From positions 1 to 64,000 of the IMG/VR virus record IMGVR_UViG_3300046171_000231: a DNA stretch of 64,000 nucleotides; one strand, 5' to 3'. A model generated the notes under the pieces. The model had not been told where the DNA came from and did not search any database. It saw only the letters and a program-made list of their open reading frames with translations. Both the position numbers and the translations under genes were made by a program. Every line of letters begins with the position of its first letter. The first letter of the stretch is position 1. Positions 6,491 through 55,300 of the stretch are shown one piece after another.

Positions 6491-6654
6491 AATAATCTCC
6501 ATTGATTTTTTTCTACCATAGCACCACACTCTTGACAACTGAGTGCTGACCAACTAAAGTGATATACTGTGGCAACTTTGTTACAATCAGGGCAAACTAT
6601 CTGTTTACCCCACATCCCTGCTCTGGTATGCTTATTTACTGTTTGTATTACCAT
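6487..6654 (-). CDS. small zinc-ribbon protein (55 aa), missed by ORF track
   Basis: MVIQTVNKHTRAGMWGKQIVCPDC...CQECGAMV...; two CxxC pairs. Confidence 0.7.
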   Translation of the reverse strand: MVIQTVNKHTRAGMWGKQIVCPDCNKVATVYHFSWSALSCQECGAMVEKNQWRLL

Positions 6655-6875
6655 TCTCCCTCTGGTTGTTTTGCTCTTGCCTTTTCAATCTTATTGTAAA
6701 ACTTATCAACAGTTGTTTCCAACTCTTTGAAAATTTCATCAATTTCTTCTACTAACTCTTCATCATCGTTACCTTGCACATAACCCTCTAAACAATAGAG
6801 AATAGTGCTTATCTGTTCTTCTCTCAAGGTCAACTTGAGAGGTGTCTGTGGAAATTCACTTCTAATTTTTGTCAT
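6648..6875 (-). CDS. hypothetical protein (75 aa)
   Basis: ORF tiling. Confidence 0.75.
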   Translation of the reverse strand: MTKIRSEFPQTPLKLTLREEQISTILYCLEGYVQGNDDEELVEEIDEIFKELETTVDKFYNKIEKARAKQPEGEW

Positions 6876-48419: not shown

Positions 48420-49055
48420 TTAGACCCATTCCAGAGCCGCAGATACAGTCGGAAACTGTTCGGTAAATAAAGACTTACAAGCATTTGCAATATCCATATG
48501 TTCTTTTTGTGTTCCGTGACCAGAACGTAAATCGATATAATGCACCCAAGAACGAACACTCCCAGACATATAAAGTCGAGTTGGTGTTGCTAATGGAAGA
48601 ACAAATCTCGCACATTCTTTTGCGATGCCTTCTCTCAATAGTTCATTATATAAGTCCATTCCTTCATTAAAATATAATTGAATTCTATCTTGTAAGAATT
48701 TAATTTGTTTTTCTGGTATATCATCAATACTATTCTGACGATTCTTTGTATCTTGCCTTCTCAATTCTGGTAGTGGTATACTTGCATCTAATAAATTTGT
48801 ATCAGCATATCTCTGACTAAACTCTTGGAATGTAAAAGAACGATGTCTTAAAATCTGTGCAGCAAGTCCTCTTGTAGTATTAATTTCAAGAGTCATAAAT
48901 GCTTGCTCAAAAATTGACCAATGCTGATGTTTGATGCAGTATTTTAAAAGACCTGCATAATTATCATTTTCCTGATTATTAGGATTGCTCACACGAGCAC
49001 AGTATGCCATGTGTTTTTCAGAATCTGGTGATACGCTAATTAATTTAACTTCCAT
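48420..49055 (-). CDS. thyX: FAD-dependent thymidylate synthase ThyX
   Basis: H.S.FE, QILRHRSFTFQEFSQRY, ARFVLP motifs. Confidence 0.97.
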   Translation of the reverse strand: MEVKLISVSPDSEKHMAYCARVSNPNNQENDNYAGLLKYCIKHQHWSIFEQAFMTLEINTTRGLAAQILRHRSFTFQEFSQRYADTNLLDASIPLPELRRQDTKNRQNSIDDIPEKQIKFLQDRIQLYFNEGMDLYNELLREGIAKECARFVLPLATPTRLYMSGSVRSWVHYIDLRSGHGTQKEHMDIANACKSLFTEQFPTVSAALEWV

Positions 49056-49580
49056 TTAATTACTAAAACGTGATAAGTAAACAATGTCTCCTGATAGTAA
49101 TGTTCTACCATTTTTGATTGCAGGAGGAACCCAATGTGTGAAAAGACTTGGAAAAATTACCAATTGACCTTCTTTTATCCAATGTTTTTGATCATTAATA
49201 ATCAAAGGTGCACTTTCTTGTGGTGCATTTACATAATATGCAAAAGATAAAGCATGTGGAAAATGATTATGGGGTTCTATCCAAGAATTTATTGGATATG
49301 TTAAACCCCAATATGCGTCAATCTTAAAATTTTTTGTATTTCCTCTAGGGTTACTATTATACAGTGAATTACTGAAACGTGCAAGTTCAATTGCTGCGTC
49401 AGTTGTAATACTTTCAATCCAGTCAAATAATTTTTTTATCTCTGGAATATGTATATCAATATAATCATTTGTTTTATATGCTTTACCACCTTGAACAGCG
49501 AAGAATTCTTGAGTATTCAACCAAGAAAGGATATTTTCTTTTATATCAAGTGAGAATGGACAATCTAAAATTTCAATCAT
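49056..49580 (-). CDS. putative 2OG-Fe(II) oxygenase
   Basis: PHNH...SFAYYV...IFPS...HWV...R motifs. Confidence 0.8.
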   Translation of the reverse strand: MIEILDCPFSLDIKENILSWLNTQEFFAVQGGKAYKTNDYIDIHIPEIKKLFDWIESITTDAAIELARFSNSLYNSNPRGNTKNFKIDAYWGLTYPINSWIEPHNHFPHALSFAYYVNAPQESAPLIINDQKHWIKEGQLVIFPSLFTHWVPPAIKNGRTLLSGDIVYLSRFSN

Positions 49581-49924: not shown

Positions 49925-49950
49925 AAAAAAAGGAGGGTAACAACCCCTCC
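49925..49950 (-). terminator. intrinsic terminator adjoining an extended -10 promoter
   Basis: GGAGGG/CCCTCC stem, U7; TGCTATAAT with -10 at 49915-49920. Confidence 0.8.
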
Positions 49951-49958
49951 TTATAATT

Positions 49959-50050
49959 TAGAACTTGTATCCATACAAGAATCTAGCTTCAGCGTAAATG
50001 ATAGTTAGAAATATAGCAGATGCTGCTAAAATTTCTGTTGTTACTAACAT
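49959..50050 (-). CDS. small membrane peptide (MLVTTEILAASAIFLTIIYAEARFLYGYKF)
   Basis: Read manually; TAATG overlap with upstream ORF; 3' end approximate. Confidence 0.55.
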
Positions 50051-50157
50051 TACTTAGCGTGAGCGATGCCACGATATGTGAGTTCGACCTCTTTTGTTTG
50101 CTGAGCTTTTTTGTTGTTGGTGTCGTAAACAACACCACGATAAGTGACTTTTGCCAT
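50050..50157 (-). CDS. DUF4278-like peptide (35 aa, MAKVTYRGVVY...LTYRG)
   Basis: Two TYRG motifs; AGGAG RBS; directly downstream of riboswitch. Confidence 0.8.
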   Translation of the reverse strand: MAKVTYRGVVYDTNNKKAQQTKEVELTYRGIAHAK

Positions 50158-50194
50158 TGGTTTTCTCCTAAAGTAATTGGATGTTTTTAATATC

Positions 50195-50237
50195 CGTTCC
50201 TTCAGTCAACTTGTGCGTCTCCCGTGAGAGATGAACG
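50195..50237 (-). ncRNA. glutamine riboswitch (Downstream-peptide/glnA-type) aptamer, compact copy
   Basis: CGUUCA-UCUC[ucacgg]GAGA-CGCACAAGUUGACUGAAG-GAACG. Confidence 0.8.
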
Positions 50238-50241
50238 AACC

Positions 50242-50471
50242 CGTTCCGAGTCGGCTTACTTGCGTCTTATGTCTCTGATGAATTACAAGCTTCTTCTACT
50301 TTATACTTGAAGTGGTTGATTAAACCCAACTTACTTGCATCATCAAGATATGGATCTTGTTTGATTTCATAAGCGAGTTCCATCCACCTATCACACTTAA
50401 TAGTCCAATGGACTGGTTCGTGACTAGCAATAAGAGTTAAAGCTGATAATAGGATGCCCATAAGATGAACG
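50242..50471 (-). ncRNA. glutamine riboswitch-type aptamer with a whole ORF in its P2 loop
   Basis: CGUUCA-UCUUAUG[187 nt]CAUAAGA-CGCAAGUAAGCCGACUCG-GAACG. Confidence 0.7.
50267..50461 (-). CDS. small protein (64 aa), hydrophobic N-terminus, nested in riboswitch loop
   Basis: ATG in 5' strand and TAA in 3' strand of the P2 helix. Confidence 0.7.
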   Translation of the reverse strand: MGILLSALTLIASHEPVHWTIKCDRWMELAYEIKQDPYLDDASKLGLINHFKYKVEEACNSSET

Positions 50472-50515
50472 TTGTGTTAATAGTAACACATTCACTCTAT
50501 ATATGCAAGTAGTTT

Positions 50516-50617: not shown

Positions 50618-50647
50618 AAAAAAAATGGCGGGATTTTTTCCCGCCAT
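50618..50647 (-). terminator. intrinsic terminator
   Basis: ATGGCGGGA/TCCCGCCAT 9-bp stem followed by a U-run on the minus strand. Confidence 0.85.
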
Positions 50648-50656
50648 ATTTGAAAA

Positions 50657-51025
50657 CTACTTCCGTTTTTTCTTTTTGGGTGCTGCTTCACCACTGTATC
50701 CCCATAAGGATGGTTTAATCATTCCTTGTCCGTAGTCAATACGTTTGAGATTCGTAAACTTATCATAATACATATCAAACAACTTGACTCTAGGACCTCT
50801 AGTTAAATCTTGATGCTCTTTACCATCAACAGTATAGGTTACGATAGACGCATCAGTTGGTGCATCTTTTGTCCGTACATCAGCAGGAGAACCATTTTCA
50901 ACTAATATTTCTGTACCATATGATTCTTTAAGAGATTCTTTTTCAGTTGAAGTCCAATATGTTTCTCTCTTTTCTGGTTTCTCTGATTTTTCAGATTGTG
51001 ATAATTCACCTAGTGGTTTAGTCAT
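50657..51025 (-). CDS. conserved cyanophage hypothetical protein (MTKPLGE...)
   Basis: ATGA overlap at 51022-51025. Confidence 0.75.
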   Translation of the reverse strand: MTKPLGELSQSEKSEKPEKRETYWTSTEKESLKESYGTEILVENGSPADVRTKDAPTDASIVTYTVDGKEHQDLTRGPRVKLFDMYYDKFTNLKRIDYGQGMIKPSLWGYSGEAAPKKKKRK

Positions 51026-51602
51026 GAACGTCCTCCCCAAGTAATTTGTGGATATGCAGCAGATACAATATCCTTTGTAATTTTATATCTATCAGTTAAT
51101 TTTTTATCTTTAACCAAAACAAGTATCTCTGCTTCAAGAGGATGTAATCCTTCAAGAATATTGATGAACATTGTCTCTCTACGGAGTCCAGAAAGTCCAC
51201 TGTTACCCTCCTTTTAAGAAGTTATAGAACTTTGTATACTCTCCACGAATTGATGCCTTCCCTTGGTCTTGAGACCCCAATGATGCTGAACCTGATTCTC
51301 TCATCATACCGACTGCATCATTAATTTTATCAGATAAAGAACCAGTCACACTATTATCTTCTCTTGTATTACCATAAGGAACTTCACCCTCTGGAAGTAA
51401 TGATACTATTGATTCATCAAAATTCCAAATCAATACTGCCATTATAGAATCGTGTGCATATGTTTTTAGAACTTCAATTTTCTTTGCTTTAGTTCTTTGT
51501 TTTGATGCAGCTTCCAATACCTCATAACAAAATGGAATGTTAGGTAACTTTTGGAATTGCTGTTGTTTTTGCTTTTACCACTTTTGGTTTAGTCGTCGTC
51601 AT
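51022..51602 (-). CDS. conserved T4-like hypothetical protein, frameshifted near 51540 and 51210
   Basis: Pieces join ...EVL...FYNFLKGG / RRETMFINILEGLHP.EAEILV..KDK.L. Confidence 0.7.
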
Positions 51603-52305: not shown

Positions 52306-55300
52306 TTATGAACCTTCTAGAGCTTCTATTCTTGTAACTGCCTCTTGTAAAGCTGCGACAAGTAAAGGTACAAGTCTACTTTGATCTATTCCTTGATATT
52401 TTGGATCGCCAGATTTGATGTTCTTATTAGGTTCATCTTCTGAATATACTTCATCTTTTGTTCCTGTAATTGCTTCTGGTACTGCTGTTACTTCATGTGC
52501 TATAAATCCATCACGAGTGCTACTTATATCTCCTATCCAATTAAATCTTGAAGGTTTTAAAGTTTTTAATCTTGCAATACCATCAGATATTGGTACTATA
52601 TTTTCTTTTAATCTATAGTCAGATGATGTGTTATAAGTAACACTGTTAGTTGCAATATCAATGGTTCCACCAGCACCCCAACCTTTTCTAAATTCAACTA
52701 TATCTCCATCAGTACCATTTCTGTTGAGTAGGATTGGATTACCACTAATTCTTGAAACTATAACTTGTGGACCTCCACTTAAAGATGAACCATAGATTGT
52801 TGCACCTGAATTACCAAATAAAGTTCCATAATTACCAATACGTATATCACCACTATCCTCGATTCTCATCGCCTCAGTAAATGAAGTTCCTGAGTTAGGT
52901 TTCACATAAAATCTTGTATTACCAGATCTTCCATCTAACATTATTGAAGAACTATGAAGTGATGATATAGGAGTTGCATCGTTACCATTTGCATCAAATT
53001 TATGATTAACACCTAGAATTGTATATAATCCATTAGAATCATCCCAAGTAGATTGTGTATAAGATGAATCAGAATAATGTCCATCAATACCAAATCTTGG
53101 AACCGCAGACCTCTCTGCTTTAATTGATAGCATTGTCGCTGGTTGACTTTTGTTAATGCCAACTCGACCATTATGATCAATTCTGACTCTTTCTACAGTT
53201 ACGGCTGGATTTGTATCATCAGGACTAGTTAAGAGTCTTATAGATGATCCATGAGGATTTGCACCAACACTTGCAATGTCAAGCATTCTACGATATCTGT
53301 CACCACCTGCTGTTGTTCTTGCAGTATAGTGAGTTAAAAACGCACCTTCACTTTGATATGAAAGAGTAGTATTTGTTTGTTGCGTTCCATTATCTCTTAC
53401 AAATAGATAACCCTCTGATGTGATGCGAAGTCTTTCTGCACCAGAAGTTCCAGAGGTAATATAAACTTCCGTTCCTTCTGCACCTATAGTTGCACGACCA
53501 TATCCACCAGTAGTATTATCTAAAAAGGAAATTGCTGCTTTAGCATCTGATGAACGAGCAACAATAACAGTATTTTGTGTTCCACCATCAACTTCTAAAG
53601 CATATGTTGGAGAGGTGCTATTAATACCAATTTTACCTGCTGATGTGATGCGAAGTCTTTCTGTACCCTGTGTTGCAAATGATACTGGAGTACCAGTTCT
53701 GTAACACCAAAAATCAAATCTTTCATTAGTTGCACCTCCATTAACAAGACCAACTCTTCCTTCAAGACCTGTATTGCTACCATCATTTGCTTCATTACCA
53801 TTCCAAAATGTCATGTATGGCGTTGCAGTAGCATTTGTATTGGTATCCTTGATCATGAACATTCCACGCCAAGGATCGTTGGTTCCTGCTACAGCTAGTC
53901 TCGTACCAGACACTGTATTAATGTTCAACCTAGTAGAGACAGTTGATACACCAGCGACATTTACATTGTCTAAGTTTGTATGACCATCTACATCTAAATC
54001 ATTATTAATACTTACATTACCACTTGAGTTGATGCGAAGTCTTTCACTACCAGCAGTTTCAAATGAAATTGTATCATTACTGGGGAATCTTATTTTTGTA
54101 TTTGCATCATCCCTATGAATTATTGAATCATTGAGTGTTACATCACCATAAACATTGAGTCCTGAATCATATGTGCCTATTTGAAGAACATTATTATGAT
54201 AAAGATTTGCTCCTCCACCATTAGTTCCTCTAAAATATAATTTTGAAAGATCAGCATTACCAATATCAACTCTTGTTGCACCACCAATTTTTAAATCGCC
54301 TGTTCCAGTATCTGTAATATAAGAGTGGCTGCCATTGTGATATATTTTTAGATCTTCTGAATCTCCAACTGATATCCTGTTACTACTACCACCACCATCA
54401 GGAACTCTAATACCTTGTCTTGCAGTTATAATTCCAACAGCAGAAACACCAGCACCAACGTGAATATCTTTTTGTGCTGTTATAATGCCAACTGAATCTA
54501 CGTTAGTTACATCTTCATATGTCAATACACCACCGACTGATAGATTCCCAGTAAATGTTGCAGATGTTCCTACTATATTACCTGAAAAACCACCACTAAA
54601 AGTAGATGCTGTAACAATTCCAGATGCGTTTATATTTCTAGGTGTAATATCTCCAGTGGTAATGTGGTCTGATGCACCTAATACAACGTTACCTGTACGT
54701 CCATAGAAACCACTTACATCCCCTGTTGCTGCTCCAGAGAATCCAAGATGTCTAACTTGTATTCAATCACTAAGGACTTGGAGGTGGTGAACTAAATTCA
54801 ATTACTGTATCTGCAAGGATTCGATATGCTCTGGTTGTATCTTTATCACTTGGGTGTTGTACCACACCATCAAGTGTAACCATAACACTTTGATTATTTG
54901 GTACTTCTCTTGATAATGTAAACTGAGTCGTAGTACCATCACCAGTAAATTGGTCAATTTTTAAATCAGATATATCAAAAGTCTCAATCGTATTTGCAAT
55001 TATGTTTCCCCAGAAAATATCATCTGCAGTTGGTGCGGTTTTGAATTGAATTTTACGACTGTCAACAACTAAAAAACCCTCAGTATATGAGGAGTCTAGA
55101 TTTGCTTTTTGTATTACATTATTGATTGCTATTTGGAGTTGAGCTGAATTAACTATGTCAGCAGAAGATCCTCCACCATGAGTTATCTTGAAAGGTTGTA
55201 TTAACACCGTCAAATGCAGCAGTTAATGTATGTGATGAACCAGAACCTACAGATGATAAATTTATATTTGTATTATTATTTGCGTTTGCTAAACTTGTTG

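Follow-up and report, generated by a model that had tools for sequence, protein, structure and literature searches.

The window analyzed here is a stretch of 64,000 nucleotides, corresponding to positions 1 to 64,000 of the IMG/VR record IMGVR_UViG_3300046171_000231. The locus is read on the minus strand, on which all the features given below lie. An upstream gene (50657..51040) is followed by its intrinsic terminator at 50625..50647, in which a 9-bp GC-rich stem precedes a T run; this terminator is inferred, from sequence alone, to shield the operon from read-through. A promoter-like sequence, TTGCAT-17 nt-TACTAT, was found at 50480..50508, and its -10 element ends 8 nt before a CGUUCA motif (50471-50466). 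This motif opens the 5' half of a putative glutamine aptamer, designated aptamer 1 (50459..50471), which consists of the P1 strand CGUUC, a single A, and the P2 strand UCUUAUG (50465-50459), as assigned by sequence, fold, and pairing counts. A nested gene of 64 codons, encoding 64 amino acids, occupies 50267..50461 and was assigned to PHROG 6471 and the T4-GC 429 family. The 3' half of aptamer 1 (50241..50271), assigned by sequence and fold, comprises the P2 strand CAUAAGA (50271-50265), the core CGCAAGUAAGCCGACUC, and the P1 strand GGAACGG; CGCAAGUAAGCCGACUCGGAACGG lies directly after CAUAAGA and ends at 50241. Aptamer 2 (50191..50239) is uninterrupted and begins three nucleotides past the end of aptamer 1 (from 50241 to 50237), with CGUUCA at 50237-50232 and GGAACGG at 50200-50194. 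Next come CUUUAG and the Shine-Dalgarno sequence AGGAG (50165..50175), a leader element that rests on a ligand-free minimum free energy (MFE) fold and is only a prediction, and then the gene that it serves (50050..50157), which encodes a 35-aa DUF4278 peptide (IF17-like, YRG motif; Pfam PF14105, PHROG 5049). In the ORF list, a 30-aa hydrophobic ORF (49958..50050) overlaps the DUF4278 stop codon (TAATG); it had no family match in the Pfam and PHROG searches, and P-HM2 has a similar unannotated ORF. A predicted intrinsic terminator at 49930..49952 ends the operon.

The two halves of aptamer 1 are 187 nt apart, with an interior of 50272-50458. The AUG (50461-50459) and the UAA (50269-50267) of the nested ORF lie on opposite strands of the closing 7-bp helix UCUUAUG/CAUAAGA. 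The unconstrained MFE fold of 50240-50473 (minus strand; -58.2 kcal/mol, z -1.85) closed exactly P1 (CGUUC/GAACG) and the 7-bp helix around the ORF. In aptamer 2 (50237-50194), the corresponding region reads CGUUCA-UCUC-UCACGG-GAGA-CGCA, in which a 4-bp helix closes a 6-nt loop or, if a U-G pair is counted, a 5-bp helix closes a 4-nt loop. A preliminary description of the locus had claimed the 187-nt separation, the positions of the two halves, and a 7-bp helix holding both AUG and UAA, all of which held on direct reading and folding. The claim that the ORF exactly fills the loop held for the window as well, but it generalises to only 7 of the 49 interrupted aptamer 1 copies described below, namely the window's subfamily. 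The neighbouring copy had been said to carry the same flanks closed by a 6-nt loop; the loop was confirmed, but its 3' core is similar, not identical, to that of aptamer 1.

A search of the whole window with Rfam at the gathering threshold yielded no match. In a permissive search with the full model, aptamer 2 scored 32.0 bits against RF01739 (cut-off, 35), with E-values of 6.8e-5 locally and 0.0054 when the whole window was searched. Against the Glutamine-II model RF01704, it scored 27.6 bits, which was below the 33-bit cut-off, and the relatives scored 25.2-32.5 bits, all likewise below 33. The 3' P2/pseudoknot hairpin of the RF01704 model was not found in the copies; CGCA and GGAACGG are common to glutamine-II and the copies. 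Aptamer 1 of the window could not be scored by a covariance model because its 187-nt insert exceeds the model tolerance. Its uninterrupted orthologues bearing the exact 3' core of the window (13 metagenomic loci) scored 28.7-36.6 bits against RF01739, the highest being L027 (36.6), and the aptamer 2 orthologues scored 34.2-37.7 bits, some reaching 35 and some not. In the Prochlorococcus phage P-TIM68, both aptamers are uninterrupted at the homologous site; copy 2 scored 35.4 bits against RF01739 and copy 1 scored 28.8 bits against RF01704. The preliminary description had proposed scoring the window copy with its loop deleted. When 50272-50458 was removed, aptamer 1 scored 47.4 bits against an nhmmer profile of 63 distinct natural uninterrupted copies, which is within the range of their own scores (36.9-54.3 bits). 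This comparison is partly circular, since the loci had been gathered through the core 17-mer. Both copies of the window have the core nucleotides CGUUCA ... CG(G/C)A ... GGAACG, as do 49/49 interrupted aptamer 1 copies and 15/15 phage isolates.

The genetic context was also considered. The DUF4278 product matched PF14105 with 30.7 bits (cut-off, 25.3) in addition to PHROG 5049. In the window, the DUF4278 ATG lies 37 nt after the last G of the aptamer 2 GGAACGG, and this distance was 29-39 nt in most related loci; the Y[RK]G motif was present in 100 of the 101 downstream peptides of related loci. DUF4278, or IF17-like, genes are the standard partner controlled by cyanobacterial glutamine riboswitches (PMC6212724; PMC2864571). 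The glutamine aptamer identity claimed in the preliminary description is therefore supported by the uninterrupted orthologues, by the score of the loop-deleted copy, and by the DUF4278 context. The window copies are very likely divergent glutamine aptamers that lie near the Rfam cut-off in a canonical genetic context, although glutamine binding is inferred and there are no binding data. Covariance-model searches miss the interrupted copies: two loci in which both aptamers are interrupted (L002 and L003) gave no Rfam glutamine match. Because Rfam reports none where both aptamers are interrupted, such copies are invisible to standard annotation.

To survey the occurrence of this layout, viral contigs were searched for exact matches to the 17-nt core of aptamer 1, which returned at least 120 loci. 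As the locus set was collected by this 17-mer, conservation of the 17-mer itself is circular. In 123 related viral loci, the spacing between CGUUCA and the aptamer 1 core fell into two classes, 16-36 nt and 193-228 nt, without intermediates; the short loop was found in 74 loci and the long loop in 48 loci and the window. In 49/49 long loops, the CGTTCA at this greater distance upstream of the core was followed by an open frame across the loop. This frame, designated ORF1, was 60-69 codons long, and its AUG was located 10-13 nt after the first base of CGUUCA in every case (49/49). In 82 loci, an ORF of 49-67 codons (ORF2) interrupts aptamer 2, with AUG offsets of 9-12 nt except in L022, where the offset is 21 nt and the ORF comes with an AGGAGG of its own. 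This is the sole exception, and the AUG offset from CGUUCA was thus 9-13 nt in 130 of the 131 nested ORFs. Neither aptamer was interrupted in 22 loci, only aptamer 1 in 15 (the window type), only aptamer 2 in 49, and both in 33. One locus (L036) has three aptamers, with an ORF1-type gene inside the second.

A tblastn search with the P-HM2 nested homologue, which is independent of the RNA sequence, hit 54 phage records, and 15 isolates were retrieved: Syn9, P-SSM4, P-SSM3, P-RSM4, S-TIM5, S-TIM54, S-CAM1, S-CAM3, S-IOM18, Syn19, Sf-CH11, Sf-FR1, Sf-CH8, S-8S56, and Sf-FP1. In 15/15 isolates, both aptamers were interrupted and ORF1 was located between CGUUCA (AUG offset, 10-13 nt) and ACGCA...GGAACG; in the isolates retrieved, the nested family was found only in the aptamer context. 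In Syn9, the nested genes are gp196 and gp197, followed downstream by gp198. The split-aptamer layout recurs across marine cyanophages, including Syn9, P-SSM4, and P-HM2. The module is conserved across marine cyanomyoviruses and consists, in this order, of a sigma-70-type promoter, which is predicted, aptamers 1 and 2, which may or may not hold a nested gene (A and B, respectively), a Shine-Dalgarno sequence with the DUF4278 gene, and a terminator. What had been described as a single case is a conserved and widespread module.

The nested ORFs are real genes under purifying selection. In profile HMM searches, PHROG 6471 was matched by the window ORF with an E-value of 2.6e-15 and by PHM2_179 of P-HM2 with an E-value of 5.5e-32; homologues are labelled T4-GC 429 (T4-like gene cluster 429) in the records of P-HM2 and P-SSM4. 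The ORF in aptamer 2 of P-HM2 belongs to PHROG 504, and both PHROG 6471 and PHROG 504 are of unknown function. In the 'HW' family of ORF1, the median pairwise dN/dS was 0.20, all the pairs (633/633) were below 1, and third positions were the most variable; the median dN/dS of the ORF2 family was 0.49. There are two nested families, ORF1 in aptamer 1 and ORF2 in aptamer 2. The two families are remote paralogues: their profile-profile alignment (hhalign) had a probability of 93.9% and an E-value of 1.6e-7 over 41 columns, with conserved Cys aligned to conserved Cys. Since the two nested families are remote paralogues, the aptamer and its nested gene have probably been duplicated as one unit.

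An AlphaFold2 model of the window protein, made with 59 sequences, had a pLDDT of 80 and contained helices at residues 23-34 and 41-52. The predicted helical hairpin (residues 21-58; pLDDT, 83-98) follows a low-confidence hydrophobic N terminus and is flanked on one side by the invariant Cys23 and on the other by Cys59, a residue conserved in >=90% of the sequences. Pfam gave nothing significant for the nested ORFs, and a Foldseek search against PDB revealed no relative (best E-value, 3.4). A profile search of 1.84 billion representatives found only 89 members, nearly all of 50-110 aa. Three other candidate interpretations of the nested ORFs were rejected. A lipoprotein signal peptide (L-x-[ST]-C) in ORF2 was dismissed, as a charged n-region is lacking, the Cys comes after only about 10 residues, and it aligns with the invariant Cys of ORF1. 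With only one Gln codon, the window ORF did not, on inspection, qualify as an attenuation-like leader peptide, and a mobile element was ruled out by the occurrence of one copy per genome.

The frames of most nested genes extend into the aptamer itself. Thirty-six of the 49 ORF1 frames run through GGA CGC AAG and stop at the UAA of the conserved GCAAGUAAGCC, whereas 7, among them that of the window, end 3 nt short of the core and another 6 end 13-14 nt short of it. As for ORF2, 76 of the 82 frames read GAC GCA AAA GCC GAC and terminate at the UGA or UAA of GACUGAAGGAACGG. The C terminus of ORF2 is DAKAD or a close variant, and the core reading of ORF1 is GRK-stop. No synonymous variation was found at the core codons (GAC, 75/75; GCA, 75/75; GAC, 75/75), whereas Asp within the body of the same ORFs is encoded by GAT in 74%. 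The non-coding portions of the halves were kept in all interrupted copies; these are CGUUCA, which precedes the AUG, and GCCGACUCGGAACGG or AGGAACGG, which follows the stop codon. In addition, the 3' core of the window's aptamer 1 is identical to that of the uninterrupted copies of 74 loci.

Pairing of the P2 strands was counted by script over unique flank pairs. Pairs 1-3 form in 44/44 unique flank pairs of aptamer 1 and 68/68 of aptamer 2. Positions 3-5 show 3-5 pair types, indicating covariation, and the uninterrupted forms have many different helices of 4-8 bp. Over distances of roughly 160-215 nt, compensatory changes keep the P2 strands complementary. P1 (CGUUC/GAACG), being invariant, provides no covariation information. 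The mean flank duplex energies were -9.8 and -11.2 kcal/mol, versus -5.8 and -6.5 for shuffles. The start codon is always located in, or at the end of, the P2 5' strand. In interrupted aptamer 1, the AUG was fully paired in 34 of 44 unique copies versus 27% of shuffles, whereas no enrichment was found for interrupted aptamer 2 (25/68 versus 28% of shuffles). The earlier suggestion that folding would bury the start codon is supported by enriched pairing in aptamer 1 but not in aptamer 2. The preliminary description had also named three outcomes that would refute it, namely, failure of the loop-deleted sequence to score as a glutamine aptamer or to bind glutamine, lack of conservation of the 7-nt complementarity in relatives, and lack of coding conservation of the ORF. 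None of them was met: helix conservation and covariation held, as did coding conservation, and glutamine binding itself remains an inference.

The halves of the split aptamers are still selected as RNA, because the core codons are without synonymous variation. We infer, again from sequence alone, that a translating ribosome must unfold the aptamer. Ribosome transit and aptamer folding would be mutually exclusive because the frames share nucleotides with the RNA-selected aptamer halves. It is possible that the uniformity of starts and stops stems in part from a single ancestral insertion and duplication rather than from repeated selection.

Upstream of the module, a TTGACT-17-TAnnAT pattern scored >=8/12 in 97 of 119 unique upstream regions, compared with 9 of 115 control windows, and in most upstream regions the -10 element ends 7-8 nt before CGUUCA. 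The promoter-like site of the window is weak (7/12), though positionally homologous to this pattern. The transcript is predicted to start at or beside the 5' end of aptamer 1; no transcription start site data are available. If the predicted promoter is used, the ORF1 AUG would lie about 10-14 nt from the mRNA 5' end, without a Shine-Dalgarno sequence. Downstream, in the ligand-free MFE fold of aptamer 2 and the leader, the core CUGAAG pairs with CUUUAG beside the Shine-Dalgarno sequence, and CUGAAG/CUUUAG is a model-predicted candidate for an anti-Shine-Dalgarno helix. Such a pairing is in line with the ON-switch mechanism that has been put forward for the glutamine riboswitches of hosts (PMC6212724; PMC6698751). 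The CUGAAG element contains the stop codon of ORF2 in relatives.

On a tree of the aptamer 1 and ORF1 DNA of 39 loci, the state of aptamer 2 requires >=7 changes, of which >=2 are forced by well-supported branches. The window belongs to a clade of six loci that is well supported, and in none of the six is aptamer 2 interrupted. Two loci, L012 and L068, are near-identical through ORF1 and aptamer 1, but wholly divergent from CGUUCAUC of aptamer 2 onward. Because of this abrupt divergence, the conserved aptamer halves likely serve as recombination joints for cassette swapping. Such swapping fits the parking-site explanation considered below, but also a functional module being shuffled. A collection of 185,579 species genomes contained the phage-type aptamer 2 core in three contigs only, belonging to the Prochlorococcus single-cell assemblies AG-337-J18 and AG-418-C09 and to one Dehalococcoidia MAG; we take all three to be phage DNA. 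This collection gave no evidence of host versions, although hosts with other core sequences are not excluded.

As regards structure, aptamer 1 is very likely the first of two tandem glutamine aptamers in the leader of the DUF4278 operon, with a gene held in its P2 apical loop, and we are similarly confident that split glutamine aptamers enclosing real genes are conserved across cyanophages. The preliminary description had offered either a ligand/translation-coupled switch or a gene parked at a tolerant insertion site. Both are kept as readings, and the switch is preferred by inference. In this proposal, the transcript would begin beside CGUUCA. Because the 3' half emerges only about 190 nt later, the AUG would be exposed on the nascent RNA until then, which would leave a brief window for initiation. 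P1 and P2 would then zip around the nested gene, and glutamine would stabilise the closed fold and hide the nested AUG. The closed aptamer would free the DUF4278 Shine-Dalgarno sequence, as in the host riboswitches, and each ribosome crossing the nested gene would prevent or undo the aptamer fold. The nested proteins and the IF17-like peptide would then be expressed reciprocally, according to the glutamine level of the host. A large insert at the P2 loop is plausibly tolerated, since UUCG took the place of the equivalent stem-loop in crystallisation constructs and glutamine was still bound by a glutamine-II RNA made of two pieces (PMC6698751).

This glutamine/translation-coupled switch is the best reading of the split aptamers, but it is an untested inference. 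There is no experimental evidence that the split copies bind glutamine or that folding alters translation, and a helix spanning about 190 nt of translated RNA may form only rarely in vivo. The Rfam scores are borderline, with aptamer 2 of the window below the cut-off, and the promoter is predicted, unmapped, and weak in the window. Furthermore, AUG pairing is unenriched in aptamer 2, and the invariance of P1 leaves it without covariation evidence. For the whole statement, switch included, we lean only modestly towards acceptance, both the binding and the coupling being inferred.

The rival explanation that survives best is a parking site. It holds that the P2 loop takes any insert, that small genes have lodged there near a promoter with the aptamer halves as recombination arms, that the aptamers sense glutamine when untranslated, and that the nested genes are constitutive without selected coupling; taken jointly, this is possible. 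In its favour, the interrupted and uninterrupted states of the two aptamers are found in all four combinations, the aptamer 2 state changes >=7 times on the aptamer 1 and ORF1 tree, L012 and L068 are near-identical up to CGUUCAUC of aptamer 2 and then diverge, and L036 carries its ORF1-type gene in the second of three aptamers. Loop replacement is tolerated in vitro (PMC6698751), and AUG pairing in aptamer 2 is not enriched. However, a parking site would be expected to hold genes with their own ribosome-binding sites and variable spacers, and this was seen in only 1 of 131 nested ORFs (L022). The other AUGs are fixed 9-13 nt after CGUUCA and most stops are inside the core. Moreover, AUG pairing is enriched in aptamer 1, the nested family was found only in the aptamer context in 15/15 isolates, and even a parked gene would unavoidably unfold the aptamer when translated.

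A second explanation is that the interrupted copies are dead aptamers that bind no glutamine, their halves persisting merely as a start region and as C-terminal codons with a stop; in the window, only the uninterrupted aptamer 2 would then be a riboswitch. Part of the 3' core is indeed coding (GRK-stop, DAKAD-stop), which could explain some of the conservation, and interrupted copies are undetected by covariance-model searches. Nevertheless, this explanation is unlikely, both in itself and for the window. The non-coding CGUUCA and GCCGACUCGGAACGG or AGGAACGG are kept in every interrupted copy, the synonymous sites of the core codons never vary, and P2 complementarity is maintained by compensatory changes. 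Interrupted and uninterrupted cores are the same, and since most isolates have both aptamers interrupted, the DUF4278 gene would be left without a sensor. Chance resemblance, in which the flanks are no riboswitch and the 7-bp complementarity is accidental, could draw only on the score of the window aptamer 2 below the Rfam gathering level and on the lack of a window match at threshold, and it is all but excluded by the comparative data, including the uninterrupted P-TIM68 copies at the homologous site (RF01739, 35.4 bits).

The preferred reading, the coupled switch, can be carried further. In its bolder form, the ligand-binding fold would wrap around the gene it controls and share nucleotides with it, so that glutamine and the ribosome compete; low glutamine would favour the nested Cys-bracketed proteins and high glutamine the IF17-like peptide. 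By extension, ORF-interrupted aptamers may exist in other riboswitch classes and go unseen because covariance-model searches cannot span such inserts. Taken as one joint proposal, extension included, this bolder form is tentative, and on balance we would sooner expect some part of it to fail than all of it to hold.

It was already known that glutamine riboswitches exist, that they are arranged in tandem with DUF4278 partners, and that they are present in the genomes of T4-like cyanophages (PMC2864571, PMC6212724, PMC9964418). The known tandem riboswitches of picocyanobacteria and cyanophages (RF01739, RF01704) have the same CGUUCA ... CGCA ... GGAACG core, the same P1/P2 with a covarying P2, and the same tandem arrangement with a DUF4278 YRG-motif gene about 30-40 nt downstream. 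However, the described members have a short-loop hairpin, whereas the split aptamers carry a complete gene of 49-69 codons in the loop, with its start in a P2 strand and its stop usually in the ligand-binding core, such that the aptamer is partly translated. The preliminary description knew of no account of this architecture, and we found none either: no mention of protein-coding genes inside glutamine aptamers was found in the cited papers, in the motif notes of the discovery paper, or by full-text searches. A prior mention is not fully excluded, since the 2011 glutamine-binding paper and the Syn9 transcriptome paper were outside the search.

Several known systems share part of this logic. 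Group I introns, such as those of phage T4, likewise carry ORFs (homing endonucleases, maturases) in a peripheral loop dispensable for the fold, with a potential conflict of translation with RNA folding. In contrast to them, the split aptamers involve no ribozyme or splicing, their proteins are tiny, without nuclease motifs, single-copy, and not mobile, and the ORF overlaps conserved core nucleotides instead of lying free in the loop. In phage MS2, ribosomes can reach the start of the maturation gene only while the RNA is nascent and a long-range helix has yet to form, and the replicase start is opened by translation of the coat gene. The likeness lies in a start sequestered by distant downstream pairing, a nascent-chain window, and a structure opened by ribosome transit. 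MS2 has no ligand, whereas the long-range helices of the split aptamers are P1 and P2 of a metabolite-binding aptamer, and a small molecule could therefore set the equilibrium. RNAIII/hld and SgrS/SgrT combine a structured regulatory RNA and a small-protein mRNA in one transcript. These are trans-acting sRNAs with the ORF adjacent to the regulatory domain; in the split aptamers, a cis-acting ligand sensor contains the ORF and has nucleotides in common with it.

Riboswitch aptamers are usually viewed as compact non-coding units upstream of their target genes. The aptamers described here, which belong to a known class, repeatedly enclose a gene with which they share start, last codons, and stop, and their core is synonymously conserved. 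If the split aptamers bind glutamine, their arrangement would be new in regulatory terms, with the sensing of a metabolite physically interlocked with translation. The small conserved cyanophage genes T4-GC 429/430, Syn9 gp196/gp197, and PHM2_179/180, all of unknown function, can now be placed in a regulatory context linked to the nitrogen status of the host. The idea is directly testable in cultured phage-host pairs (Syn9, P-HM2, P-SSM4). Rfam-based counts of glutamine riboswitches in cyanophages are underestimates. The nested genes themselves were observed to be unannotated in several recent genome records.

Three tandem aptamers were found in the related viral locus L036 (at about 6500-6830 in locus coordinates), in which an uninterrupted aptamer was followed by one split by an ORF1-family gene and then by another uninterrupted one. 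The aptamer array is therefore modular. The nested ORF of a further related locus, L022 (about 2090-2330), was the only one that carried its own AGGAGG Shine-Dalgarno sequence and a 21-nt offset from CGUUCA, and the aptamer core of this locus was likewise atypical (GGACGCGCCGCCGAC).

The 66-codon gene nested in aptamer 1 was missing from the annotation of five deposited genomes, those of the cultured cyanophages Sf-CH11 (L135), Sf-FR1 (L138), Sf-CH8 (L139), S-8S56 (L140), and Sf-FP1 (L141), yet it was intact and conserved in all of them. In the profile search, the nested-ORF profile matched two long proteins, P0085 (270 aa) at 4 separate stretches and P0096 (1073 aa) at 7. Judged from the profile matches alone, these stretches may be repeats of the Cys-bracketed hairpin.

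Within a 739-aa structural-protein-like ORF, CGTTCATC and GGAACGG were observed on the minus strand of the window (53469-53556) with 80 nt between them. Since the Rfam search gave no match at 53469-53556, the pair was read as a chance occurrence rather than as an aptamer.

On the minus strand, a 30-codon hydrophobic ORF (49958-50050) overlaps the stop codon of the DUF4278 gene with its start (TAATG), and it had no family match. A comparable ORF lies 3' of PHM2_181 in P-HM2, where it was left unannotated. The operon is closely followed downstream, on the same strand and within 48420-49580, by a 211-aa ORF of the ThyX-like thymidylate synthase type and by a 174-aa ORF that resembles a 2OG-Fe(II) oxygenase, the latter matching PF13759 at 25.8 bits, slightly below the cut-off. 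Both neighbours are common to P-TIM68, P-HM2, and the window.

The window had no match to the manA RNA (RF01745) at E<=0.05. In two relatives, this RNA was observed shortly downstream of the glutamine-aptamer operon, at 2175-2374 in L002 (164 bits) and at 586-780 in L026 (189 bits).
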